The notes beneath the pieces were generated by a model. It ran no database searches. It saw nothing but the letters and a program-made list of their open reading frames with translations, and was not told where the DNA came from. This document shows, in pieces, positions 6,100 through 52,420 of a DNA stretch of 64,000 bases. Origin of the DNA: Ministeria vibrans ATCC 50519 (Eukaryota; Protista; Filasterea); assembly GCA_943704425.1 (NCBI GenBank), contig CALSCP010000307.1, forward strand, positions 6,318 through 70,317, read 5' to 3'. Position 1 is the stretch's first letter. Every line of letters begins with the position of its first letter. The position numbers were made by a program, and so were the translations under genes.

Positions 6100-9000
6100 T
6101 CAGACAGCCACGAAGCCGGTGAAATGCACAAAGTGCGAATCGTCAAAGGAGGTGTTGAGAGCACCCACGGCCGAGTCAACGCTGGCAACCATGCGGGGTG
6201 GACCTGTCGAGAACACGCCAATCTTTTGGTTGGGATGCAGGAGTTGCACCTGCTGAAGCACACTGACGAAGTCAGGGCGGCCAAAGTGCGTGACGGCCCG
6301 TGTGCCCGTGAGCACGCTGCGCTCACCCTGCGTCTCCGACGAGGACCGCTCCGCCACGTACAGCATCAGCGTGCGCAAGTCAAACTTCTGCTTGGCCTGC
6401 GTAATAAACACGTGCGCCTCCAGAATGCCGTCCTTGTCTTCTTCCTCCGCCTCGCGAATCACATCGATGAACCACTCAAATTTCTTCTGTGAACGACACA
6501 CCCACAAAAAGTAGACATGCTGCACGACAGAGCGACGCGCCCGCTGCACCAAATCCTTCAAGATGGACGCGTAGGGCGTGACGCCAATGCCTCCGCCAAT
6601 GAGCACGGCCGTCTCGTAACGGTACCACTCCTGGGCACTCTCGCCAAAGGGTCCCTCAATGTAGAGTGGAGGCAGCGCCTGCACTATTTGGTCTGTCTTG
6701 GCCTCGGTTGCACTGTGATGCGCCGTGCGCGTGTCTGGGTACACCTGCGCAAGACGCCGCGTCCACCGACCCACTTGGCGAATGTGCATCTGCAGGTGGT
6801 CTTCATGAGGTGCCGACGTAAGCGTGAACGGGTGGAACTCGCCCCTGCTGATGCCCGCCGTCGCCACACGCACCCACATGCCCGGCTGGTAGACAAACGA
6901 GGCGGGGCGCTCAAAGACGAGACTGATCACGCCGCTCGGCAGATGACGCACTTCAATCACCCGCAGTGCGCGGTGGCGGCGCGAGAGTGTGTACAGCTTG
7001 TCGAGCACATACACAAAGATGGAGGGCGCCAGGAAAAACTGGAAGTAGGGTGCCTGCACCAGCTGGAGCGAGCCATGGAGCACAGTCAAAATGTAAATGA
7101 GGGGCGACAGGTAGCGGTGGGTCAGCGTGAAAAAGTCGTAGGCGTGGCGGCGCATGTAGGGTGTGAGGAAGGCCACAAAGGTGACCACGACAAAGACAAG
7201 GGTGTAGCCAGTGATGCCCGTCATCGTCTGGAACAGCCAGTAGGTGTAGCCAGGCGTCTCGGACGAGTAGTGAAATACGGCTGGCAACAGACACGTCAAG
7301 TCCTCGCTGGGCTGCGTCACAATGCTGTAAAAGTTAACGCAGTGCCCGGCCGTGTGCACCAGCGCCGCACCCACAAAGGTCCAGCCAACGATGCTGTGAA
7401 AGGAGATGGCCTCGTCGAGGGGCAGCAAATGGCGAACGGGCGTCGAGCGCAGCAGTGTGATGGTGTTGCGCGACACAGCGAGCAGAAGCACCGAGAGTGT
7501 GAACATAATGACGGAGGCAGAGCCGCGTGTGGTCGCCACACCAAAGCCAGTGATGCGGCGCAGTCCACGTGACTCGCGCAGATAGCCGTAGTAATGGAAG
7601 CGCTCGACAAAGATGAGAATCACCGCAATGGTGTAGAGCGACAGCCAGAAGACGGAGAGGCGGTTATCGCGCAGCCAAGCTCGCATACGCGTCCAGCGCG
7701 TGGACACGGCAAGAGGCACGGCGTTCAGGTGTGCCACCGACGGCGGTTCTTTGGCGCTCTTGGTGAGCGGTCGATCAATGCCCAGCATGTTGCTGTTCGA
7801 CATGGCGCCCATGTGGTCCGACGAAGGTGGGCCGTCGTGCGCGTTCACTGATTCATTGGACGCGTTCAATTGCGAGCGGCCCTCAAGCAAGTCAATAACC
7901 GCACGCGATTTGGGACGTTGTTGCGATGCCCGCGACGCGACCGCGCGTGCTTGCGCCGCCTCAAACTCCGCCTGTGCTTGGGCCTGTGCGGCAATGACTG
8001 CGGCGGCACTTGATACCGACGTGGACTGACGTCCCGGCTGCGGCACCGACACACTTCCGCGCAGTAGTGTCGGATTGCGCCCTGGCAGGTGTCGATTGGG
8101 ATGCACCGACACAACCGATGTGCGACGACTTGCGACACCAATGGCCGAGACGGGTCGAGCCTCACCGTCGACCAGCTCTGCACCGTCGCCATTGCCATCG
8201 CTACTCGGCGTGGGGCCCGTCGACGAGCCCAGGGCCACTTTGATGCGGTGGAAGGGGGAGCGACCACCCGCACGCGTCGGCTTCATATCAAAGTTGTTGT
8301 TCATGGAAGACATGGCCGGATTGAACTGCATGTCGTCGAGGAGCACCGTGTGTTCAACGCCAAGTAGACGCTCAAAGGCGGCCAGGGTCATGTCCTGCCC
8401 GGCTATTATGCCTGCACGCATGTACAGACGCTTCGCCAGCTCGTCGACGTGATCGCTGCTGAGCAACTCGACGCCGCTCGCCTCAAGGTTTGCGCGCAAC
8501 ATCATCTTGAACGTCTCAAAGTCAATGGTGCCGTCGCCATTAACGTCGTACACACCAAAAAGAAAATTCATCTTTTGTTCGGGTGTGCCGCGCGACATTG
8601 TCGTCAGCATGTCGAGCACCGCACGAAAGGGTACATGATCACGGCCGGGACCCACGAGCATGTCGCACACCTGCTTGGCAAAAGCACCGTCCGGGGGCAG
8701 GTCAAACGCAAAGCAGAACTCAGCGCGAGTGAGTGTCTTGTGCAAAAGAGCGCCCGTGGTGGGACCCAGCGACTCGACAATGCGGTGGATCTCAATGTCC
8801 GGCGTGTCCGTTGTAACCCGGCTGAACGGTTGCGACATGGCGACGCGCAGGAAGCGACGCACTTCGGCTTGACGGTCTTCTCTGGCGACAAGGCGCTTTT
8901 GAACCTGACGGTCCGACAGCGGCTTGTTTGTGTCGATGAGTAGACAGCCGGTGGCGTACGAGTGTTCGGCGGCGCGCAACTGCTCGAGGAAGGCATCGCG

Positions 9001-10084
9001 TCGCGAGACCGCACCAAACATGATGTGCGTGGAGTGATGCATGGGGTCGAGGAAAAGAACGCCGCACGTGTTCACACGTTCGTCGCCACAGGCGTACACT
9101 TGGACAGGATACTCACGCTGGGTCGGATGGATCTTGCGCATAAGAGTAAGCGACGTGGCATCAAACAGTAGTACGCCCGTGGTGCCGTCCGAAATGGCGA
9201 CGTAGCAGGCGGTTGGCTGGGCGTCGCGCGACGACAGATCGATTGCCCCGTGCAACGTCAGGTTGTCAATGGTAAGGACGTCGGGTGCGCTGACGCCGTC
9301 GATGCAGGCGCCAGTGGGAATGAGAGCCGGATCGACGCGTGTCCACCACGACGACCAGAAGGGGTTGTGGAAGACACCAAAGAAGCCCCACTTGTGTCGA
9401 CGCCACGTTGCGGCAAGATACATGCCCAGAGCGTTGAAAAGAATCCACACGCCAATGGCGCCCAGGGCCCACGCTGTCTCCTCGCGACCTTCCGTGTCGT
9501 TGTAAAAATCAAATTCGTGCAGTTCGGTGCACTCTTCCATGTCAGACACCTCGAGCTGCTTTGGTTGGGGGCAAGGATCGCCGTTGACGTGGTGGAAGAC
9601 GTCGTCCTGAATGTCGTCGTGAGCGATGGCCGTGTTGCGACGGATGAGGTCTGCTATCGTCGTGTTGTGGATGATGGCAATCTCTTCGGCGGAAAAGAGT
9701 GAGTTCTTGGTGTTCTCAAACCACCAGCGGTCAGCGTCGCGGATGCGCGAGAACTGATCAATGATGATGGTGGTAAAGAGTTCACCGGGGTCCATGCCTG
9801 TCTCGACAATGCCTCCGGCCCACACGTCAATGTTATCCAGCGACCCATTGTACGCCCGCTCCAGCGCCTCCCACGCGCCATTATTGGGCACGTCCGGCGA
9901 CGGAATCTCACTGAAGTTGGCCTTGCGTGGCAGCCCAAATGCTGAGAGAGAGAGTATTATTATGATACCAAAATAATAATAATAATAATAATAATAATAG
10001 TTATAATACTATAATAGTTATAATACTATTATAATAATAATAATAATAATAATAGTTATAATACTATAATAGTTATAATACTAT

Positions 10085-10141
<57 letters not shown>

Positions 10142-10212
10142 ATAATAGTTATAATACTATAATAGTTATAATACTATAATAGTTATAATACTATTATAAT
10201 AATAACAACAAC

Positions 10213-10251
<39 letters not shown>

Positions 10252-10264
10252 ATACGAAGGAGAG

Positions 10265-10298
<34 letters not shown>

Positions 10299-12068
10299 CA
10301 ATTAATAATAATAACAATAAAATAATAATATTATAAGAATAACATTACGTCTTATAATAATGCACCGACTGGTCAAGTCAAAAACCAAACTATAAATGAT
10401 CAAAACAGAGAGGAAAATAAACAACATGAACGGCTTACCTTCTCGAATGGTCTGGTAGTCGGGGACACCGTGGTCGCGGCCGCGCTGGATGTTGAGGACC
10501 ATAAGGTCGCGACGAGACTGGTCGAGGGGTCCTTGAACAAAGTTGCGCAGGTCCTCGACAATGATACGGTCTTCGCGCTCGCAGATTTGCGACGAGAGAC
10601 CCATTAGCATGTCGGCAAGGCCATGCTCGAGGACAGCCTCGTTAGGCGTGAAGAAGGAGTTACAGGTGCGAAAGGCAATGTTGCCAGCGTCGCCCGTCGC
10701 GTTGGTCGTCGTATGAAAGACGCACTGGTTGTTGCGGCGGTAGCCTCCGGGTGGCACGACGGTGTGGCCAAAGCGCATAGCAGCAACGTGGAAGGGTTGC
10801 GAGATGCCCGGTGACGTCGTCGGGTGGTAGCCCGTGTAGGCAGGCAGGTCCTGGTTGGTGAAGGCGGGCACCCATTCGTAGGCGGTGATGCGCTGCTGAT
10901 GGGCAATGGTCCACTGGCGGGCACGCTGGTAGAGGTCCTCGTCGCTCCAGTCAGGGTGGATGTTGCGCAACCGACGCGCTTGGTAGTTGTGCTCGCGGTA
11001 GAGCAACAGCTCGACGGAGAGCAACATGGGGTTTTCGTTTTGAGCGGCGTTGCCGGTGCGAAAGAAGCGCGCAGGCGAGATTTGGCGATTGACCGTGGGC
11101 GGCGCAGGGTTCTCCATCCCAATGCCAATCGTATTGTACGAGGGGTACTCTTCGCCGTTGATATCTTGCGTGAGCAGCTCGCCGTTGGAGAAGGAGCGGA
11201 TGGCGTCACTGACGGCACGACGATCGCCATAGATGACACCGCCGTCAATATAGGGTGTCAGCGTGTTGAGCTGTTCGCGCGGGTTATTCGGCCCCTGGCC
11301 CGATTGGGCGGCAAAACGCGATCGATGGATGGGCATCCATTTCTCGCCGGTACAGTCGTGGTCAAAGGGTTGGTCACACAGGGGAACTTGAACATTGAAA
11401 TATTCGGTGGGACACACCGGTGGCTGGACCGTCACCAGCTCCATGACGGTGAGCTGGCCAAAGAAGACCATGAGCGCAGTACGATTACGCCACGACCCCA
11501 GACCCGAGGCGCCCTTCATGACCTCCTCCGAGATGAGACGCGGGTTGGGCCGTCCGCGACCGGATGGAATGTAGACGCCGTCATCATAGGCGGCCTTCGC
11601 AACCCGTTCCAGCGGCTGGTCCACAATTCCGAGACTCGGAACACCAATGTTGTTGTACCTACGGTCGCAGCGTGCGAGCAATTAGCAAAACGGCAGGGAG
11701 ACGTTGAGTGGCAGGAGGTGTGATAACAAAAGAATTTGAACTTTTTTTTTTTTTTTTTTTTTTTCCCTCTTTCGGCTCAAATGGAGCAGAAGGGCGCGAC
11801 GATGGCACCAAGGGTACACGGCAGCGTGGTTGGTGTCACAAAGACATCTTGACTGAGCTGGGGAGTTGTCGTACCATCCGCTGTAGGATTGGCGCTCTCT
11901 CGTCGACGCATCAAAGTCAATAAGATAATTTGGGTTCTCGTTGAGAAGCGCCGCGATGTTGCTCAAGCTCGTGTTGGTCACGAGCGGCAGCGTGAGTTGC
12001 GCATGAGCCACGGGCGACAGAAGCGCCGCGGTTGCAATGAGCGTGAACACGATCACCCTGAGGTGCAT
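6100..12068 (-). CDS. DUOX: Dual oxidase: signal peptide, peroxidase-like domain, TM, EF-hand region, ferric reductase TM domain, FAD- and NADPH-binding domains; 3 exons (12068-11875, 11658-10439, 9941-6100), 1751 aa
   Basis: Signal peptide MHLRVIVFTLIATAALL. GWYNN forms across intron 1. Also FFGQ, NENP, AAMRFGH, NIQRGRDHG, DQFSRIRDADRWWFEN, DPCPQP, EF loop DVNGDGTID, heme His pairs (FHSIVG..VHTAGH; THR..VLHG), EFHPFTLTSAP, GPFG, GGGIGVTPYAS, THFGRPDF. Spliced length 5256 nt is a multiple of 3. Confidence 0.96.
9972..10335. repeat. (AAT)n/(AAC)n microsatellites plus AATAGTTATAATACTAT units in DUOX intron 2
   Basis: Directly visible. Confidence 0.9.
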
Positions 12069-14377: not shown

Positions 14378-15982
14378 ATTTGTGACTGTGTGTTATTGTG
14401 AGTCTCTGTTCCACACGGGCTTTTTATTCACTCCTCCCTATAGATTATCGCCTGTGCGGAATGGGCCATTGAGATTGTGAAGCCACGACCAGACTTTATC
14501 ATTCCTTTTCCGGGCGGTGTGCTTCACTTTGAATATTCGTGGTGCTTCTACCTGACGCTGGTGGTGGGCATAGTGTCGCTGCTGATGGGCCTGGTCTTGC
14601 TCTATCTGGTGCACACGGGAGCCGCTGCGCGTCTTTTCTCCTACGCCAATGGCAATCCCATCAGCGAGACGTCCGCCAGCGGCGATGTCTACAAGGCGCC
14701 TCTGGACCGCTCGGCCGATCTGCACATGTCCAATGATGGCAGCATTGCCTTTGCGAGCTCCTCATTGCAGGTCCAGAGTAACTCAGACGTCCAAACACTG
14801 CGGCGCTACACGACCATCGCTAATCGACTCAAGACGCTGGTGGAGTTCCAAGAGCGCATTGCCACCATCAACGTGCTCACGCCGGCGCACGCGGGACTGG
14901 GCAAGAGCAGTATCTACGCTAAACAGCCCAGTCGCGTCGGCTACATGGGTCAGCGTGGCCCGTCCATGGCTAACACTCTGTCGGGCTCCGACGTCCATCA
15001 GCTGAATGTGCCTGTGAGCCGTCTCAGCTCGGCCAGTCAACCCCGGCAGCCCATGTCGTTCCACCCGTACGCGCCTCAGGAATCGCAGAACAGACACTCT
15101 GAGCAGTCCCACGACGCCGACACCGGCTTGGGTCTCTGGCACAATGCGTCGCGTGGCGATGGGCACCGACACCAGGCATCGCCTACGGGCAGCGTCAGTA
15201 GCCTTGACTTGGCTCTTATGAATGGCTCACGCAGCGGTCTGCAGATTGCCATTCCCATGAACACGCTTGCCTCACAGCCTCCCCGTCCACACTACCACGA
15301 CAGCGACGACCAACTCCGCACGACACAGAGTGTTTTGCTGCAGCGACAGCGGGATGCACCACCGCCCCTCGAGATGCATTCAAGTGGGCTGCTCGAGACA
15401 TACGACTCGAGTGCCATGTCCATTGGTAGTGCGGCCGGCGTGCACGGTCTTAAGGCAGCCCAGCTCGCAGCCATGGGTGTGGGTGCGCCGGGCAGGCGCA
15501 AACACTCGTCTAGCAGCAACACAAGCGCCAACCAAAACCACAATGTGTCACCTCGTGGTGGAAAGGTCCACCCGATGCGACTCTCGACGGGCTCCCTCAA
15601 CGAAGGCGGTCCTTTCGTCTCCGACCACAGCTCCGACCGTGTTGCCATGCGACCAGGTGTTGAAGGCGCCCGCCCTCGTGCTGGTCGCTCCTCCTCGTCC
15701 AGTGCCACACCGTCGTTGGCATCGCCGCGCGAGGTGCTTGCCGACGACACAGCACAGTCGCCGCGTCTGCTGCCCGGTCAGATTCCCTCGCCACTTGACG
15801 GTGGCAGCTCGGGCGACACCGACAGTGCTCTCCCTTCCAGTCCGAGCAACTCGCCGCAGGCTGTTTCAGACGAGTCCGGCATTCAACGAGGCGCCAACAG
15901 CGGAAGCGACGATACCATGGCGCCCAACAAAAAGGCTGGCGGCGCAGTGGGGTTTGCTGCGCCTGCCACAGTCGATGTGTGA
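12613..15982 (+). CDS. DUOXA: Dual oxidase maturation factor (DuoxA/NIP family) with a long low-complexity C-terminal tail; multi-exon, 5' exons approximate
   Basis: W..ASVETLTEYSA...[88 protein letters not shown] all match DUOXA signature segments. Confidence 0.9.
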
Positions 15983-28769: not shown

Positions 28770-30971
28770 ATGTCAACGCGGAAACGACGTCGTTTGGGCT
28801 CGCGGGCAACACGTGCGTACTCGGCAACGTGTGGGGGCGAGGCGGAGGCGCAGGAGGAGCTGGCAGACGCCGAATGGATGCCCGATCGCGGTTCGCTGCA
28901 GTTTCGTCTGCGCGAAAAGGGTCAGCTCTGCGACGTGACCGTTGTGGTCGAGGGACAGAATTTCTTGTGCCATCGCATCGTGTTGGCCGGCGCAAGCGAA
29001 TACTTCCAAAAGTCGTTCACAGGCGACTTTGAAGATTCTCAGAAAACGTCGCTTGAACTCAACGACTTGACTGCCGCCACGTTCCACAGCCTCCTGCGCT
29101 TCATGTACACCGGTGCGTGCGACGTCAACTCCGAGACGGTTGCTGAAGTGCTTGCCGCCGCGGACCGGTACGTTGTGCTGCCGCTGCGCGACCTGTGCGG
29201 ACAGTACCTGGCGCGCCACCTCTGCATCGCCAACTGCAACACCGTCTGGTCCATTGCCGAGTCCACCGGCATGACCTCGCTCGTCAAAATGTGCCAGGAG
29301 AAGGCCTTGGAACTGTTTGGTGACCTCATCGTGCACGAGTCCTTCTTCTACATGGACGCAGAGCGTCTCGACTCGCTGTTGCGCAGTGACCAGCTCGATG
29401 CAGACGAAGAGTGCGTCTTCCTCGCCCTTGTCGCCTGGGCACGCTTCCATGACACCACCGCCTCGGGAGAACCCATTCCGTCGGCTGCCGCCTTGGCCGT
29501 CAGTGCCGTCTCCAACGTCAACGCACTTCACCAGGCTGCTGGTCCCGACCTCAATGTCGAACGCCTCCTTGAAGCGCCCATTTTCGACCGACCCGCCTTT
29601 ATGACGCCCACCAAGCCGGCTCTCCTCACTCGCTCCTCGGCTCTCAACACTCACACCTCTTTTAGCCCAAGTACAGCTTCAACCTCAACGGCAGCATTGC
29701 TAGCTTCTGCAGCCGAGCCAGCATCAGTCGAGGCGGACGACGATGTTCCCGTTGCCGGCAGTAACGCATGCAAAAACAACACCCAGCAGGACCAGTTACA
29801 ACAACAACAACAGCAACAACAACAACAGCAGCAACAGCAGCAGCAGCAGCAGTACCAATTCAATGACTCTAACTGTCCGGTGCTACCGGGTGCGCGCCTC
29901 AACGATCTCGATCAATTGTTGCCCCTGTTGCGCTTCCCACTGATGCGCTCAAAGTTTCTCACGCTCGTCGAGCGCTCGTCCACCTTCATGGACTGTCCCA
30001 TTGCCAAGGACCTTCTGCTTGAGGCCTACCGCTACCACGACTGCGGGCGGTGGAACCACGACCTGGCCTCGCCGCGCACCATCCGTCGCATGTATCAGTA
30101 CCAGTGGGTCTATGTGTTGGGCGGCGAAGACGACACCGACAGCAACTTTGCGACGGTGGAGCGTTTGAATCCACTCATTGGTACGTGGGAGCGTGTGGCG
30201 TCGCTAAAGACGGCACGGCATGGGTGTCGTGCTGCGGCCATTGGGCGCGATGTGTATGCGTTTGGGGGCCACAACGGCAAGGAATACCTCAGCTCGGTGG
30301 AGAAACTATCGCTGGGCGGCAGTGGCGCAGCGGAGTGGGCTGAGGTACGGCCAATGCTGGTGCGGCGGCACTCGTGTGCATCCGCCGTGCTCGATGGTCT
30401 GCTGTATGTCGTTGGTGGGGAGACAAATGATGGGCGCTTTGTGACGACAGGCGAGGTGTACTCGCCGCAGGAGAACACCTGGACGGCCATTGCCGACCTG
30501 GGCAAGGAGCGATGTAACTGCGCCGCAGCGGCACTCGATGGCTTTGTCTATGTCATTGGCGGTGAGGACAACACTGACTCGGCCTTGGACGTGGTACAGC
30601 GGTACAATCCGCGCACGAGCCGCTGGGAAGATATGCGGTCGATGCTGGTGCGTCGTGCCTACTCGGCGGCCGCCGTCGTCGATGGCTTCCTGTATGCCAT
30701 TGGCGGCGTCACCGGCAACGGCGACTCGGTGGCCACCGTTGAGCGCTACGACCCGCGTCTCAATACCTGGACCATGGTGGCACCGACCAATGTGTGTCGC
30801 AGTGGCTCTGCCGTCTGCGTGACCAACGGGGAAATTTACCTTTTTGGTGGTTACGACGGCAAGGCCTGTCTCAACTCTGTCGAGCGCTACAACGTCGCCC
30901 AGGACTCCTGGGAGCTCATTGCTTCCATGATGCAGATTCGAAATTTGTGTGGCGCGTGTGCGTGCCGTTAG
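28770..30971 (+). CDS. BTB-BACK-Kelch (Kelch-like) protein, 733 aa, single exon
   Basis: BTB LCDVTVVVEG..FLCHRIVLAGASEYF, BACK EECVFLALVAW..LRFPLM, six Kelch repeats (GG..VERY.P....W). Confidence 0.95.
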   Translation: MSTRKRRRLGSRATRAYSATCGGEAEAQEELADAEWMPDRGSLQFRLREKGQLCDVTVVVEGQNFLCHRIVLAGASEYFQKSFTGDFEDSQKTSLELNDLTAATFHSLLRFMYTGACDVNSETVAEVLAAADRYVVLPLRDLCGQYLARHLCIANCNTVWSIAESTGMTSLVKMCQEKALELFGDLIVHESFFYMDAERLDSLLRSDQLDADEECVFLALVAWARFHDTTASGEPIPSAAALAVSAVSNVNALHQAAGPDLNVERLLEAPIFDRPAFMTPTKPALLTRSSALNTHTSFSPSTASTSTAALLASAAEPASVEADDDVPVAGSNACKNNTQQDQLQQQQQQQQQQQQQQQQQQYQFNDSNCPVLPGARLNDLDQLLPLLRFPLMRSKFLTLVERSSTFMDCPIAKDLLLEAYRYHDCGRWNHDLASPRTIRRMYQYQWVYVLGGEDDTDSNFATVERLNPLIGTWERVASLKTARHGCRAAAIGRDVYAFGGHNGKEYLSSVEKLSLGGSGAAEWAEVRPMLVRRHSCASAVLDGLLYVVGGETNDGRFVTTGEVYSPQENTWTAIADLGKERCNCAAAALDGFVYVIGGEDNTDSALDVVQRYNPRTSRWEDMRSMLVRRAYSAAAVVDGFLYAIGGVTGNGDSVATVERYDPRLNTWTMVAPTNVCRSGSAVCVTNGEIYLFGGYDGKACLNSVERYNVAQDSWELIASMMQIRNLCGACACR

Positions 30972-35362: not shown

Positions 35363-37240
<1,878 letters not shown>

Positions 37241-37357
37241 CGGAATGACAATTAAGAAAAATATGATTGTTTCAATTTTTGTTAAATGGGATCTCTCGGA
37301 AATGAGAAGGATGTGTGATTTAATTATTGTAAAAAAAGTTTAACTTTTTTTTTTGAG

Positions 37358-37524
37358 ATGAGTGTCTCTCCCAAGGAGCTCCAGGCATTGCTGCCGCTAC
37401 TATCGTCGCCGGGAAGCAAGCTGGAAGAGATTTCTCAGTTGTTCGACAAAACCTTTTCTCGCTCAGATCACTTTCGTCTCTGTTGTGCATTGGTGCGGAA
37501 ACGAGCGCAACAAACAGTCCCCAC

Positions 37525-37566
<42 letters not shown>

Positions 37567-40381
37567 GTGTGTGTGTGTGCATTATATACATAATATACAT
37601 TATATATAGTATTATGTGTGACTTTGCTCGTCGCGCTAACGATCGTTTTTCACCAGAGCGTGTTGCTTGAGGAAAAGGACATCCTCAGTGGCGACGGAGA
37701 GCGCCTTGTGTCGCTCTTCCTGCTGTACCATGCGTACAGCGACGTGCCCATGCAGAGCAACCCCTTCCTGGCCGTCGTCGTCGCCATGGCTGCGCGTCTG
37801 TCGCCCAGTCTGCTGGGCACCGGCGAATCCTTCATGGTCATTCGTCTGCTTGATCTCATCCGCTTTCCGCCCCAGCCTGCCCTCCGCCTTCACTCCTCCG
37901 TCCTCGATCTCACCCCTGCCGAGGTATCCAGCTCATCGCTCGCCCTCATTTCGTCTCTCTCTTCCATCACAATCACATTCATCTTTTTTTTTTCTGTATC
38001 ACTGTGCAGATTTGTGTCATGGGCGCTCAGCTTCCCATTGCGCTCCCCTCTCAATTCGATGCGATTGTCGCGCTTGTGCATGCTCAAACGGCCAAGCTCC
38101 CTCTCTCATGCTCACGCGATCTGTACACGGTCGTTGCGACACCAACACCGGCACAGGGCACATCGTACACTTTGGACGCAGCAGCGACGCTCGCCAAGGA
38201 TGCGTCAAGCCTCCTCTGCGACACACGCGTTCTCTACTCGTCAGCTCCTCCCCCCATGATCCGGCCAGTGCCCTCGCTCTACCCGTGTGAGCAAGACGAG
38301 ATGCCCTGGCTGCATGTGCCCGCCGTCAATCATGCCATTCAGTGGGACTCCACCATGTGCCTCGACAGCTCCGATCCAAACACCGCTCAAACTCTTCTGA
38401 CCATGGAAAAGGCTTTCAAGACCCCCCTCTCGCCAGCTCAGCAGAGCCAAGTGCTGGCCGAACTCGACCGCAACCCGGCCCTCGTCTATCACATTGGCCT
38501 TACACCAGCCAATCTGCCCTCTCTCGTCCAGCTCAATCGAATGGTCGCCCTTGAGATTCTTCTTCACCTTATCTCCCGCCAGCAAATGACCGAGTAATAA
38601 TTCTTGTTTCGTTCAGGCCACTTGATTCATTCTGTCCTTTGCATATGCATATACATATTAATTATTATAGTATGATGTTCTCTTCACACACTCATGCTCT
38701 TTTTCTCCTCCCTCATGTTCACTCGCGCAACTATTGTTCCCACTCACTCACGCTCACTCACTCACTCACTCTCTCTCTTTCTCTCTGCTTCTCAGGTTCT
38801 TCAGTGCACTGGTGAACATGGAGCCCACACTGCAGTCCATGGAGGTTGTCAGTGGTCTCACCCAGCGCGTCGAGCTTCCTCCCGAACTGCTTCATTTCTA
38901 CATCACAAACTGCATTGCCCACTGTGAATCCACCGATGACAAAGTCCGACAGGCTCGCAAAGTCAAACTTGTACGCACAATATCTACACTCTTTCGTGGC
39001 TTACTCGTTCTCACTGCGTCTGTAGGTGTGTGTGTTTCTTGCGTCGCTCATTCTGCACAAGATCATTCGCGTGCAGGACCTGAGTCCCGAAGTCGAGACT
39101 TTTTGCATTGCGCAGGGCACTCCTGTGACGTACGCTTGTGGTCTTGCGCGGCCCATTGACTCTGCGGTGCATTCCAGCACTCTTTGTCTACCGAGTGTCT
39201 TGGGGTGTTCACGTAACCCTGCGCGTGTCCTGTTGGGTGCACAGGTGTCGCAGTGGATGGACCGCGGAGTGCGGCGTGTGATTGAGCTCACTCTCCAGGA
39301 CGGCCGTCTTCTTCGCTGCACTCCTGACCACCGTGTTTTGCTCAGTGGTGCTGATCAGTGGTGTCCCGCCGGTGCGCTTCAGCCGGGAACGCGCATTCGC
39401 GTCGGACTCGAGGCGCCTTGTGACGATCCCGATTCCGACACTGCCGATTACCTTGCATTTGACTTCAACGGTCACCTTCCCACCGGCAAGGCCGTGCACC
39501 ATCAATCACAGCTGCACCCTCAACAGCATCGACATCAACACCGAGAGCGCTGTCTTGCTCTTGCGCGTCTCCTCGGTGCCGATATCGACGATGTATCGAT
39601 TCTCCGGTCCACTATCGATCGGGCTTGCCTCGAAGCCGATCGCGCTCTTGTGAGCGACAGCAGCAACACCATCGCTCACAGCGACACCCGTAACGCATGG
39701 CAGCCTGCCCTCTCTACCGCGTCCCTCTTCTCGCTACTCAGCGACACCGCCTGTCCCTTGCCCGTTGTCCGTGAGTTCCTTGCCGCTCTCTGTGGCCGCA
39801 TTGCTCTTGTCCCTACCCTCACACCAACTGGGTTCCTTAATGACCAAACCACAGTGCTCGTTCCCCTTCCGCGCACCGTTGCATCCACGACCCTTGTCAA
39901 TCTATTTGCGCGGTGTGGCGTCACGGTGCAGTCGCACAACCAACCTACACCATCGTCGCGAAGTGACACGCCTACCTTCCTCTCCATCGTCGACACGCAC
40001 ACATTTCTCCACTCCATCGGACTACGCTACTGTCTTGCACACTGGCACACCCTGTCTATTGCCATTGCCTACCAGCGCACCCTCACCCGCTCCCCCGACC
40101 TTCCCCTCACCCCCGCCGCCTTCCTCTCCACCACTCTCCCCACATTCTCCCACCCCCAGTCCTCTCCCTCCACTCTCTCTCTTGCCGTCGAATCCGTCCG
40201 CGACATCGGCCAGTGCCTTCCCGTCTACGACCTCTCCGTGCCCTCCGTTGAGTCCTTTGTTGCATCTGGCATTGTCGTGCACAACTGCCTCCAGTTCAGT
40301 CGGATACGAGAAGCTCACAGTCTGCTCAAGTCCCTCCGATCAGGCGCTAATGAGTCTTCCTCATCGACAACTCCAAAATAG
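37358..40381 (+). CDS. CNOT11: CCR4-NOT subunit 11 (DUF2363) precursor containing an intein; multi-exon
   Basis: RLVSLFLLY...SNPFL, PMIRPVP, WLH....IQWDSTMC, AFKTPLSPAQQ..VLAEL..NPALVYHIGLTPANLPSLV, LVNMEPTLQSMEVV..L...VELPPELLHFYITNCI..CE, VKLVCVFLASLI..KII, EVETF|CLQFSRIREA after removal of the intein. Confidence 0.93.
39104..40285 (+). mobile_element. Intein (394 aa) with a degenerate LAGLIDADG homing endonuclease region, inserted in CNOT11
   Basis: Block A CIAQGTPV, block B LTLQDGRLLRCTPDHRVL, block F VYDLSVPSVESFVA, block G GIVVHN followed by +1 Cys. The flanks rejoin into the conserved CNOT11 motif. Confidence 0.93.
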
Positions 40382-40496
40382 TGACGAAATACACATCAAA
40401 AAATACACAGGGCTGGTCAAAAATACAATGACAGCAGAGAGAGAAAAAAGAAAAGAAAAAAAGTGTGTGTTGTTGTGTGTATGCAATTCAAATGCG

Positions 40497-44889
<4,393 letters not shown>

Positions 44890-47892: not shown

Positions 47893-50800
47893 ATGGCGGA
47901 ACCTCCTGTGGGAGACCCTTCCAACATTGACGATGGTACTGCCCGTGTCGTCTCGCGAGTTGATGGTGTTTGTTTGTGTTTGTTTTTTATATTATATGTG
48001 TGTGTGTGTCTTCTCTGCTTTGCTTTTTTGACAGCTTTCCCTTTCCATCGGCTGTCAAACAGACGTCGCAGAATCAGCACTGCTGGTCCGTCCGAAGCCA
48101 AGCGACACGTACCGGCTGCTGTGGGATCCCGAGATCCCTCGCGAGCCCAAACGCCCTCGAAAGCTCTTTAGAATACGCGGCGTATCGCCCCACAACGGAC
48201 AGGTACATGCCGAGAGAGAAAAAAAAAAGAAGGAAAAAAACAAGTTGCTTCTGATGCGTCTTGCTCGCTCCCCTGCGCTCGCCAGGTGGCTGTACCGCAC
48301 GATCCACGAAGCCGGCCGACTGGTCTTCGGGCTCCGTTGGACCTGCGCATTGTGGTGTACTCGTACAGCGAGCACTCGATGGGTCCGCCGCCCAAGAAGG
48401 AGCTGCTCATCACCGGACTTGCCCCCGACATCTCCGCCGATTTCCTCCACGCCCTGTGCTCCGACCACGGCAGCCTCTCCTCGTCGAGCGGCGTCAAGCT
48501 GGGGAAGCGCAGAGGCACCGGCGAACGACTCGGTATTGCGCTGGTTCGCTTCAGTCGGTCGCGAGACGCTCGTCGCGCCGCCGAGAAACTCGATCAGTCT
48601 GTGATGATGGGTCACCGCGTGACGGTGCGCGTTGACCCGGCCGCCCAGCTCTTTTCACGACTTTGTTCCGACCCTTCGGCGTCCATTGATGACCTAGAAA
48701 AGGAATGCGAGTCCATTGTGGGCGTTGGTGCACGTCCAACTGTTGGTGATGTGGCCACCACCGATCTGTATGGTCGTGCTGTAGTTCCCAAACGAAAGGC
48801 TGCCCCTCCCGTCTTCGTCCCTCCTGGTGCTGCTGCCAACACCGCTACTGCTATTGCTGCTGCTGCTGCTGCCGCCACCGCCGTCACTGTGAGTGGGGGA
48901 AACGGCATGACGTCCGCCCATAATGTTCCGCCACCGCCACCCGAACCTGAAGAGGGCGAGCTCATTCTCGACAGCACCGACTTTGCCGCTGCCTCTTCAT
49001 CGCCACCCCCACCACCACCGCCACCTGAACAGCCGCCCCCTCCTCCACGCAGTGCTCTCAACGACGACACTCCTCCTCCACCACCCCCACCCCCTGACCA
49101 CCCACCGGCCTCAGCTGCGCATCCTCCTCCACCACCACCCTCCTCCATGCCTCTCACCTCGAGCACATCCACTCTGCTCGCATCCAAACCCGATCCATCT
49201 CCATTCACCTTTGTACCGCCCTCTGCTGCCACAGCTGCTGCCACAGCCGCTGCAGCCGCTGCAGCTGCCGCAGCCATTACCACTGGTGCCTCCGCCGCAG
49301 GGGGACCAGGCGCTCTTGCGCCTCCTTTGTTGTTGCTACCGCCCGTTGAAGGACCCGTCTATCCACCCTACCTTGTTGAGATCACATCGCCTCTGCCACT
49401 CACGGTGCGTGCCTCTATGGTCGCCGAGCACTGTCTCAAGAATCACGTGTACCCCAAGAACATTGTGTGCCAAAAGGACGGCACATGTCGCATACACTTT
49501 GACGACGCAGACACACGCAATGTTGCTGTGCGCCTTATCGACAGTACCGTCATTGCCGGTGTCATTCTCGATGTACAGGCGACCGACGATCCCGTGTTGC
49601 TGCAGCGCTTCAATGCGGCTGCCGCGTACCGCGAACAACAGCGTCGTCTCAAGGAGATTCAGGAGGAACAAGAGCGAGTGGCGCGTGAAGCACGTGAAGA
49701 GTACGAGCGCACTCTTCACGGCGAACGTGACATGTCCATCTCGCCGTCGTCGTCGCGCGCTCCGTCGCCTGCGCCACCACTGGTTGACGACTGTGAGATA
49801 GACCCCGATAGCGAGGCAGTGCCCTTCCTAGAGTCCAAGGCGCACCGCAGTGCGCGGCGTACGCTTGACGACGACGACTCGGCCAACGAGAGCGACGAAG
49901 ATGAAGCGTCGCTGCTGCCCTCGACACAGGATCTTACTGATGCCATTGTGGACCGACTCAAGGCGGATCTCTTGCGTGCTGTCAAACTCGACGCACAGCG
50001 CAAGGTCATTGAAAAGACAGTCACGTCGGAGATTGTCTCTTGGCGCGAACGTCGTCAAACGGACCACCATCGTCCGTCGTCGTCGTCGTCGTCGTCGTCC
50101 ACCATGCCCCACCGGAGCAGCCGCGACCATGATCGAGATCGTGATCGTGACCGACACCACGACCGCGATCGTGACCGACACTACGACCGCGATCGCGACC
50201 TTGCTGAGCGTGATCGACGTCGGTCGCCGCGACACGATGACAAGGATAAGGAGGCGTCTGGTGCGAGTGTGCCGTCTACCGACTTTCGCATCAAGGTGTG
50301 TCGTGATGCACCTGTGGTGCGCACGGGGGCGCGCATGTGGCAAGGGTACGGGGCCAAGCCGGCAGGGAGTACCGCAAGCGATGCCGCAGCTGCCGCTGCC
50401 GTTGCCGCTGCCCTCTCGTCCCTGCCACCTGGCTCGGTGGCGTGGCGGGCGGCCCAGCTGGAGCAGAAACGTCTGGAGGAGGAGCGTCTGAAGCGTCTGG
50501 AGCGAGAGCAACAGCGACGCATTGAAAACGACCAGAAGATGCATCAGCAGCTGTTGGAGGAACTGGATGCTCGCCGAGGCTGGGGTAAGCCTCGGACGCA
50601 AGCGAGTGCGGCGCGCACATCGGCCGTCAAGAAGATGCGCGACAAGAGTCGCAACAACGCTGAGGAAGGTGGCAGCAGCGGTAGTAGTAGGAAGAAGCAG
50701 CATCGGCAGCCGAAGGAGCGTGCCAAGGCAAAGCGACGACACTATGACGACGACGAGGACGACGAGAGCGACAGTGATAGTGACAATGCGACGAGCGACA

Positions 50801-52420
50801 GCAGCGACGAGAGTGACGACGACGACGACAACGTCAATGTCGGCTCAGTCGTGCGTGCCATGAACAACAAAACGGTGCGCGACCAGGGACTCGACGAAGA
50901 CGACCAGTGGATCGACTTTGGCGACATGGCCGGCAGCAAATCGAAGAAGCATCGTAAGCGCGAGGCGGAGCGAGCCAAGCGCAAACAACCGAAGAAGAGA
51001 CGCCGACTGCAGTCTGGCTCGGACGACGAAGATGACATGTCGATGGCGCCACTGGACGACAATGTCCACGACCAGTGGTCTGCCACGCCCGCCGTTGCGG
51101 CCACATCCAAAAAGGGGCGTGGAAGCAAGCGCAAGAATGAGGAGGCGGCGCGGAATAGCACTGCAACAAAGCGTGCTCGCACCGCACCCGAGCTGTTTTC
51201 GGGTCTTCAAGTGCCCAAGGTGGTGGGCGATGCAACGGTGCACGCCAACCTGCGCTCCCTTGAAGATGCGGATGTGCTACTGGATGCGGAGGATGCATGG
51301 TTAATGTCGTGTGCGCTCAATGAGCGGGAGGCGGCGTCGGCCGACCAGGGCACGGGCGAGCGGGTGTATGCTCAATTGAGTGAGGCATGGCTGGAGCAGG
51401 CGACCAAGTCGGGCTTTGACGATGACGTGGCCCACCCAATGGGATGTGCCCGCAGCCAAGGCGTGTATCGGGTGTCAGACGACGAGAAGGCCCGACGACG
51501 CTGGATCAACGCGATTGGTGTGGTGGCAGATGTGCGAGCACGCACTGCCGAGGGTGCTGGCGGTGTCACGGCAACCGCGGCGGCTGGCGACGTGAGTGGA
51601 AGTGGCGGAGCCGGTGGATCGAGCAGTGGAGCGGGAGGGGCAGGCGGTACGGGTGAGAGCACGAGTGCGACTGAGCAAGCGCAGCATCATCTCATGGCGG
51701 AAGCGCAAGCAATGGTAGTGAGCATGGGTGGCTCGGCACATGACGAGGCAGCCGTGGCAGTGGCTGCAGCGACGCTAGCTAAAAACGCTCAGCAGTCGAT
51801 GGGGGCGTCGTTGTCGCGTGCGGCACGAGCCAACCAGCGCGCGCAGCACATGCCATTGTTTGGCGGGGACACAACCGCCATGCTGCGGTCACGCCAGAAG
51901 CTACTTCGGTTCCATGCGTCGCCCATTCACAACTGGGGACTGTTTACGCTGACCCCCATTGAGGCCAACGACATGGTCGTGGAGTATGTGGGCGAGCAGG
52001 TGCGCGCACACATTGCCGACATGCGCGAGGAGCGCTACGATCAGCAAGGCATTGGCAGCAGCTACCTCTTTCGCCAAGACGACAAGCACGTCATTGATGC
52101 GACCAAGCGTGGCAACATTGCGCGATTCATGAATCACAGCTGCGATGTAAGGCCCTGATATGTGTTTTTTTTTTTGTTTCAATCACTTTGTTTCTCTCTC
52201 TCTCAAACTCTCGACCTATCCTTTTCTTATTTATTTATTTCTCTAGCCCAACTGTCGAGCGGATGTGGTCCACGTAGACGGCCAGAAGAAGATTATTGTG
52301 TACTCACGACGGCCCATTGCGTCGGGTGAAGAGATCACATATGACTACAAGTTTCCCATCGAAGACGTTAAGATCCCATGTCACTGTCGCTCCCCCATTT
52401 GTCGCGGATCCCTCAACTAA
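47893..52420 (+). CDS. SET1: Histone H3K4 methyltransferase Set1/SETD1 (RRM, N-SET, SET, post-SET)
   Basis: [99 protein letters not shown]....CRGSLN*. Confidence 0.94.

Follow-up and report, generated by a model that had tools for sequence, protein, structure and literature searches.

Inteins are rare in the nuclear genes of eukaryotes, and before 2023 about 15 host families were known, nearly all of them enzymes or Prp8. We analyzed a 64,000-nucleotide stretch of DNA (contig CALSCP010000307.1, positions 6,318 to 70,317; hereafter the window, with coordinates counted from its first letter) in which the last exon of a gene for CNOT11, a subunit of the CCR4-NOT deadenylase, carries a long in-frame insert that, judged by its residues and predicted fold, is a class-1 intein. 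A 2018 survey of eukaryotes listed Prp8, VMA1, RNA polymerases, ThrRS, GLT, CHS, and eIF5B as nuclear hosts and counted three inteins in Capsaspora and a single one in choanoflagellates, with none in Metazoa (PMC5784728); neither CCR4 nor CNOT occurs in its text or supplements. The holozoan examples reside in Prp8 of Salpingoeca rosetta and, in Capsaspora owczarzaki, at Prp8 sites B and E and in an RNA polymerase subunit (PMC5784728). These are like the window intein in being nuclear and in belonging to close unicellular relatives of animals, but they differ in host, none being a CCR4-NOT subunit. A fragment of the Capsaspora RNA polymerase intein (...DGRDLVCTPEHL) resembles block B of the window family (DGRLLRCTPDH), a likeness noted in this fragment.

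A different pattern is described in the main text of a 2023 report on the metamonad Anaeramoeba, where each genome has 45-103 inteins, the hosts extend to cytoskeletal and chromatin proteins, and the inteins have spread non-allelically and are linked to those of viruses (PMC10710043); that main text mentions neither CNOT nor CCR4. In the host pattern described there, the Anaeramoeba inteins (non-classic nuclear hosts, non-allelic sites, clusters shared with giant-virus inteins) parallel the family to which the window intein belongs, whose hosts include tensin-like, Cbl, Pumilio, kinesin, MYST, CNOT4-like, CNOT11, D5 primase, and PolB proteins. Unlike that metamonad, the window genome has DUOX/DUOXA and BTB-Kelch genes. 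No earlier report of a CNOT11 intein was found in the literature searched, and the databases searched likewise hold no record of one, in agreement with the original prediction that CNOT11 is an apparently new intein host. The features of the gene and of its insert are as follows.

37358-37492, plus strand: CNOT11 exon 1 (ATG start, 45 codons, GT donor), 37-48% identical to CNOT11 N-termini
37657-37923, plus strand: CNOT11 exon 2 (89 codons; AG acceptor and GT donor, phase 0), matched by CNOT11 homologues
38010-38593, plus strand: CNOT11 exon 3 (194 codons and 2 nt), in which the conserved C-terminal MIF4G-like "antenna" domain begins; median 43% identity to 120 homologues
38796-38970, plus strand: CNOT11 exon 4 (1 nt and 58 codons; splice sites from sequence), median 55% identity to homologues
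39026-39103, plus strand: N-extein part of CNOT11 exon 5 (26 codons, ...QDLSPEVETF), 69% identity to homologues
39104-40285, plus strand: class-1 intein (394 codons, Cys1 to His393-Asn394)
39104-39418, plus strand: N-terminal HINT half of the intein; block A Cys1 at 39104-39106, block B T73-P-D-H76 at 39320-39331; beta-strands with a predicted local distance difference test score (pLDDT) >90
39518-40138, plus strand: degenerate central domain resembling a homing endonuclease, from full-length alignment with relatives and fold matches
39554-39592, plus strand: LAGLIDADG-like motif 1, LALARLLGADIDD (residues 151-163)
39764-39805, plus strand: LAGLIDADG-like motif 2, VVREFLAALCGRIA (residues 221-234)
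40166-40285, plus strand: C-terminal HINT half; block F VYDLSV at 40223-40240, block G His393-Asn394 at 40280-40285; TIGR01443 match over residues 373-394
40286-40381, plus strand: C-extein and stop codon (Cys+1 at 40286-40288, CLQFSRIREAHSLL..., 31 codons), 53-63% identity to the C-terminal CNOT11 motif

The translated insert contains no stop and is in frame with the exteins on both sides, making exon 5 a single open frame of 451 codons (39026-40381) with the intein included. Stop-free runs in the window average 35 codons, as compared to 394 in the intein. The insert begins CIAQGTPV, has CTPDH at residues 72-76, shows the C-terminal blocks F and G as VYDLSV...VVHN, ends VYDLSVPSVESFVASGIVVHN, and is followed by TGC, the codon of Cys+1. 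The Pfam family Intein_splicing is matched with 38.7 bits (gathering score 35.8), and TIGR01443 (intein_Cterm) reaches 25.9 where 15.6 is required; the profile for the intein N-terminal region (TIGR01445) falls slightly under its cut-off. A HMMER search of 1.84 billion representative proteins returned 1106 matches at E ≤ 1e-3, of which 198 had E ≤ 1e-10 and the top one 2.3e-37, a signal far beyond chance. Within a 38-sequence alignment, C1, G67, T73, and H76 are invariant.

A structural model of the intein was predicted with AlphaFold2 from the same alignment (pLDDT 87.8, predicted template modelling score 0.89). It shows beta-strands at residues 1-100 and 358-393, with an alpha/beta domain (139-344) between them. 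When the model was compared with PDB structures using Foldseek, endonuclease-bearing inteins ranked first (TliVMA at 6e-9, followed by PI-PfuI and PI-SceI), with E values of 6e-9 to 2e-7 across these best matches. PI-SceI/VMA1, PI-PfuI, TliVMA, and PhoVMA share with the window intein a HINT fold split by a LAGLIDADG-type domain and the run from C1 to HN/C (a slash marks a splice junction here and below). Identity to them is only 11-14%, and whole-chain TM-scores are low (0.26-0.35) because the two domains are placed differently. The host CNOT11 is a scaffold instead of an ATPase or polymerase, and the second endonuclease motif of the window intein has no acid. In a phmmer search of PDB sequences, the Mtu RecA, Pho RadA, DnaE, DnaX, and DnaB inteins were recovered with blocks B and F/G aligned. 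Among solved structures, the Mtu RecA intein is nearest in sequence (E 1.6e-7, ~30% identity) and also in HINT fold: the HINT part of the model superposes on the RecA mini-intein with a root-mean-square deviation of 1.6 Å over 101 columns, and on the RecA, DnaB, and DnaE mini-inteins as a group with 1.6-2.6 Å. The RecA intein differs in being bacterial and in having a recombinase host, and the similarity is confined to a HINT core of ~140 residues.

With the full residue set on the right predicted fold, the insert reads as a genuine class-1 intein. Sequence, profile, fold, and host alignment thus agree with the original prediction of an in-frame class-1 intein in the last CNOT11 exon, and the HMMER profile check bears it out. 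A Hedgehog-type Hint domain was also considered. Hedgehog/Hog Hint domains share the HINT fold (1at0 is a weak Foldseek match, E 9.5e-4) and an N-terminal Cys nucleophile; they lie at the C-terminus of their proteins, cleave only at their N-terminus, and are without the HN pair and a +1 nucleophile. The window intein, on the other hand, has both junctions and exteins that continue the host domain. This candidate was rejected: the HN/C junction is present, conserved host sequence continues 3' of it, and Pfam returns Intein_splicing and no Hint.

The host gene was searched exon by exon, and exon nucleotides were pooled solely for codon counting. Each of the five exons matches CNOT11 at 37-69% identity (blastp, 120 CNOT11 homologues), and FSRIREA is present after the intein. 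The four introns are of the GT..AG type (164, 86, 202, and 55 nt) and have a guanine-cytosine (GC) content of 41-47%, as compared to 50-63% in the exons. From this five-exon model, the precursor would be 838 residues long, and 444 without the insert. The 26 residues directly before the intein are the best-conserved part of this CNOT11 and match Pfam CNOT11 (PF10155) with 26.7 bits (cut-off 25.9). A metagenome scan with exon 3 gave one match only, L005 (JGI contig Ga0073954_11680306; tblastn E 1e-24), a transcript-like 1.9-kb contig that encodes a complete, intein-free CNOT11 of 511 residues and served as our empty-site reference. The C-terminal domain of the L005 protein is ~84% identical to stramenopile and plant proteins.

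In the window, the intein is flanked by ...SPEVETF on one side and CLQFSRIREAHSLL on the other. The exteins EVETF/CLQFSRIREA match the homologue motif EV[QE]AF/C[IV]EFSRIREA, which runs without a break in 108 of the 120 best homologues (among them stramenopiles, plants, and an insect) and is continuous in human CNOT11 structures as well; the proposal that excision would rejoin a conserved C-terminal motif is therefore upheld by the extein alignment. The homologue set comprises the best 120 of 2231 matches (281-894 residues), and no intein Pfam domain was detected in these best 120. Because the motif of the homologues has a Cys at the same position, Cys+1 is a native CNOT11 residue.

Human numbering was obtained by aligning the reference CNOT11 to chain 8bfi_C together with the residue labels of PMC9902336. 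The offset is 55 for Ala476 as well as for Phe491, which places the insertion site at human Phe477/Cys478, one residue after the equivalent of Ala476 and 13 before that of Phe491. The C-terminal domain of CNOT11 (residues 323-510) consists of five HEAT repeats forming the MIF4G-like antenna (Mauxion et al., PMC9902336). The antenna is dispensable for joining the complex and recruits GGNBP2, an interaction that was tested with the A476E and F491D mutants (PMC9902336). As placed by this alignment, the intein splits the last HEAT repeat within the partner-binding surface of the antenna. The CNOT10- and CNOT1-binding regions lie upstream of the site and are untouched; the precursor could thus join CCR4-NOT, with an antenna that would be whole only after splicing.

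The original prediction overlooked the degenerate LAGLIDADG domain within the 394 residues. This central domain aligns end to end with that of a relative, P0004, whose equivalent region matches Pfam LAGLIDADG_3 at 5.7e-15; residues 105-360 of the window intein, searched alone, have no Pfam endonuclease match up to E 10. In motif 2, active enzymes and P0004 have GGDG; the window intein (FLAALCGRIA) carries Ile in place of the Asp and has no acidic residue at the catalytic position. One of the two acids that LAGLIDADG activity requires (Asp or Glu in each motif) is accordingly missing, and the motif 2 acid is also lost in most of the relatives with nuclear hosts. We consider the endonuclease probably dead on account of the lost acid in motif 2 and the absent profile match, the Asp of motif 1 being kept. 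The middle domain is probably a decayed LAGLIDADG homing endonuclease, and the intein is probably no longer mobile.

The relatives of this intein come from JGI, ENA, or Logan metagenome/SRA contigs, including those of Logan SRR26425195 and ENA ERZ25067493. Fourteen of them align over all 394 residues, and 13 of these 14 have C1...HN/C; the other, P0065, ends HK/S. The hosts of these 14 are tensin-like, Pumilio, PX-kinase, kinesin, FHA-kinase, Cbl, COX11, and CNOT4-like proteins and D5-type primases. Among the 150 best intein relatives, not one is flanked by CNOT11 exteins. Pfam assigns the hosts of eukaryotic nuclear type to a tensin-like PTP-C2-SH2 protein (P0007), a PPP phosphatase (P0008), a MYST acetyltransferase (P0009), a PX-kinase (P0037), a kinesin with a PH domain (P0051), an FHA-kinase (P0069), Cbl (P0083), COX11 (P0084), and a RING and RRM protein of the CNOT4 type, a second CCR4-NOT subunit (P0106). 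Four hosts are Pumilio proteins by Pfam (P0012, P0065, P0073, and P0116), and these four inteins are allelic, as they share the junction NVIEK/C. A further host (P0001) is an RNF113/Cwc24-like CCCH and RING protein. Pfam also identifies giant-virus-like hosts, namely D5-type primase-helicases (P0004 and P0086) and family-B DNA polymerases (P0005 and P0006). The link to giant viruses rests on these host domains; an IMG/VR search with the single intein protein found no relative.

P0007, P0009, and P0051 lie on gene-dense contigs of 116-378 kb in JGI samples 3300056625, 3300056626, 3300056825, and 3300056827. Their presence in the same sample set points to one intron-poor eukaryote with at least three inteins of the family. 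Similarity between the window and that eukaryote is limited to the inteins themselves. In a maximum-likelihood tree of 15 full-length inteins, the window intein groups with nuclear-host inteins (Shimodaira-Hasegawa-like approximate likelihood ratio test, SH-aLRT, 92-93) and stands apart from the primase inteins. No second intein was found elsewhere in the 64-kb window. Around the related loci, the only inteins found were in the genes by which those loci had been recovered.

The CNOT11 intein is therefore no lone oddity and belongs to a family with many non-enzymatic hosts among eukaryotic nuclear genes. As read from its members' sequences, the family has colonised many nuclear genes in some eukaryotes and giant-virus-like replication genes as well. 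This looks like a radiation of nuclear inteins, one that we did not find described in the literature searched. The original prediction had also held that eukaryotic intein hosts are mostly enzyme active-site regions. Anaeramoeba had already departed from such a pattern in the 2023 report, and the present family has many non-enzymatic hosts.

The composition of the intein matches that of its host. GC content is 0.60 in the intein as compared to 0.57 in the host exons, GC at third codon positions is 0.63 as compared to 0.66, and the codon-preference score is -1.19 as compared to -1.16, with neighbouring genes at -1.03 to -1.18. From these agreements in composition and codon use, the intein is probably old and long resident. 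A recent horizontal arrival was rejected on the same evidence, the intein having the composition of the host.

We consider it quite likely that the insert is a splicing-competent class-1 intein with a dead endonuclease, vertically inherited and locked in by its insertion site. The catalytic residues are all present at invariant or near-invariant alignment columns. Under this explanation, CNOT11 would be transcribed, its four spliceosomal introns removed, and the 838-residue precursor translated. Cys1 would undergo an N-S acyl shift, aided by Thr73 and His76 of block B, and the N-extein would be passed to Cys+1. Asn394 would then cyclise with the help of His393, and an S-N shift would yield a normal F-C peptide bond and the 444-residue CNOT11. 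The last HEAT repeat of the antenna would be complete only once the intein has been excised. Vertical persistence would follow because imprecise deletion would wreck the most conserved host motif.

Several observations weigh against this explanation. Splicing activity is a prediction from the sequence. The host CNOT11 is divergent, with 43-55% identity in its C-terminal domain as compared to ~79% among the reference homologues (stramenopiles and plants), and on that ground it may be a relaxed or paralogous copy. Loops 111-140 and 181-200 of the intein are of low complexity (His/Gln-rich or Pro/Ser/Thr-rich) and of low confidence in the model. Motif 1 of the central domain (LLGADIDD) retains an Asp at the canonical position. 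The intein tree has long branches and moderate support (SH-aLRT 92-93). Finally, the window is draft scaffold sequence, interrupted by ~930 bases of N at ~43531-44463, 3 kb downstream of the gene.

The divergence of the host and the long low-complexity loops would also suit the remnant of an intein that no longer splices, being retained in the mature protein or able only to cleave, and that may lie in a redundant or degenerating paralogue of CNOT11. We regard such a remnant as improbable, since every catalytic residue is intact despite the long residence suggested by composition, the five exons are open with canonical splice sites, and the flanking extein motif is the best-conserved part of the copy (69%). 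Moreover, 394 residues left permanently between the HEAT 5 helices would destroy the partner-binding surface. Slightly less improbable, though still unlikely in our view, is conditional splicing, in which a Cys-dependent redox or metal switch would govern maturation of the antenna and recruitment of CCR4-NOT partners. Cys1, Cys+1, and twelve other intein cysteines make disulfide or metal trapping chemically possible, and the site lies near the equivalents of Ala476 and Phe491, both needed for GGNBP2 binding. An unspliced precursor would have no working antenna yet would retain its CNOT10- and CNOT1-binding parts. Prokaryotes have regulated inteins, and regulation has been proposed for Prp8 inteins as well. 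Nonetheless, nothing about such a switch is specific to the CNOT11 intein: Cys1 and Cys+1 are common to the family whatever the host, and neither CxxC nor another regulatory or known sensor motif was found in the intein. The decayed endonuclease and disordered loops resemble the neutral decay of a selfish element, and the insertion site by itself already accounts for persistence. The redox or metal switch put forward in the original prediction is for these reasons unsupported, the step from an element that is hard to lose to one that acts as a switch being speculation.

We give very little credence to a third alternative, that the stretch never appears in protein and is an unusual RNA intron, an assembly chimera, or a contaminant. 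The draft scaffold and its N gap are in favor of an artefact. The apparent low-GC stretch and the long open reading frames on both strands at ~43531-44463 are due to the N run itself, which is bordered by poly(A) at 43484-43530 and (CT)54 at 44464-44571. Over the gene, however, 37200-40700 is contiguous with no N, the insert lies exactly in phase with the exteins and is host-like in composition, and its 394 open codons have intein homology from end to end. The junction DNA reads ...ACTTTT/TGCATT and ...CACAAC/TGCCTC. Neither GT/AG nor AT/AC occurs at the junctions or up to 3 nt away, and use of any in-frame GT..AG pair in the surrounding 40 nt would delete or add residues of the conserved motif. 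With no splice sites at the junctions and no pair that restores the motif, RNA splicing cannot restore the CNOT11 motif, and an RNA intron was rejected.

If the insert is indeed a splicing-competent intein, its mechanism and element type are known; the CNOT11 host, the location at a protein interface of a non-enzymatic scaffold, and the spread of the family in holozoan-type regulatory genes appear to be unreported. CNOT11 would add a non-catalytic intein host, at the surface through which the CCR4-NOT deadenylase gains partners such as GGNBP2, and would support the view that inteins persist wherever conservation forbids sloppy deletion, beyond active sites. The members in tensin-like, Cbl, Pumilio, CNOT4-like, MYST, kinesin, and COX11 genes make a second intragenomic spread like that of Anaeramoeba testable, among organisms whose signalling genes are of holozoan type. 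Intein-bearing genes will probably be mis-modelled by gene predictors. As a splicing module, the intein would be a new one of the Cys1/Cys+1 type, with F(-1) and C(+1) as its natural flanks.

Four neighbouring genes bear on the source of the window or stand out by their structure:

6100-11681, minus strand: DUOX (animal haem peroxidase, EF-hands, and the ferric reductase/FAD/NAD domains of NOX)
~14477-15982, plus strand: DUOXA-like gene, divergent from DUOX; Pfam DuoxA at 28.5 bits (cut-off 23.3)
28770-30971, plus strand: BTB-BACK-Kelch gene (KLHL-type), 733 residues, complete, single exon
48286-52158, plus strand: SET1-like gene of 1290 codons, with an N-terminal RRM and a C-terminal SET domain (Set1/COMPASS-type methyltransferase)

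Mouse DUOX1 aligns to the DUOX frame across the peroxidase, EF-hand, and NOX parts (E 4e-180). The best database match of the frame is a bivalve protein (44% identity), and all of its matches are distant animal sequences. Vertebrates have DUOX and DUOXA in the same paired arrangement. A full DUOX beside DUOXA indicates an animal or a near relative and is the best clue to the source of the window; no DUOX has come to light in Cnidaria or choanoflagellates (PMC5372347). Against a metazoan source, older DUOX surveys predate most protist genomes, and the window has ~52% GC and introns of 55-200 nt, which also fit, and are more typical of, a unicellular holozoan. That the window is metazoan, and the tip of an undescribed radiation of the intein family in holozoan genes (CNOT11, CNOT4-like, Pumilio, Cbl, tensin-like, MYST, and kinesin), is a tentative idea that we hold to be rather less probable than its converse. 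Were the source metazoan, the rule that animals have no inteins would fall. Proposals that intein inhibitors could serve as selective antimicrobials rest on that rule.

Rfam and tRNA scans of the window returned nothing, and Pfam scans of 30 further window open reading frames returned widespread families only. Other genes recognised by Pfam encode a USP-type ubiquitin hydrolase, an Iso_dh protein (isocitrate/isopropylmalate dehydrogenase), a Methyltransf_16 protein, a WSC-domain protein, a NatB auxiliary subunit, and PPR proteins. The BTB-BACK-Kelch gene could be a retrogene, having a single exon while other genes have several short introns. The SET1-like frame has the highest GC in the window (0.61-0.62). 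Microsatellites lie in and around CNOT11, with (GA)n upstream at 36236-36351, (GTCT)10 in the first intron at 37525-37564, and (AC)37 just downstream at 41027-41101, in the region of the neighbouring minus-strand gene.

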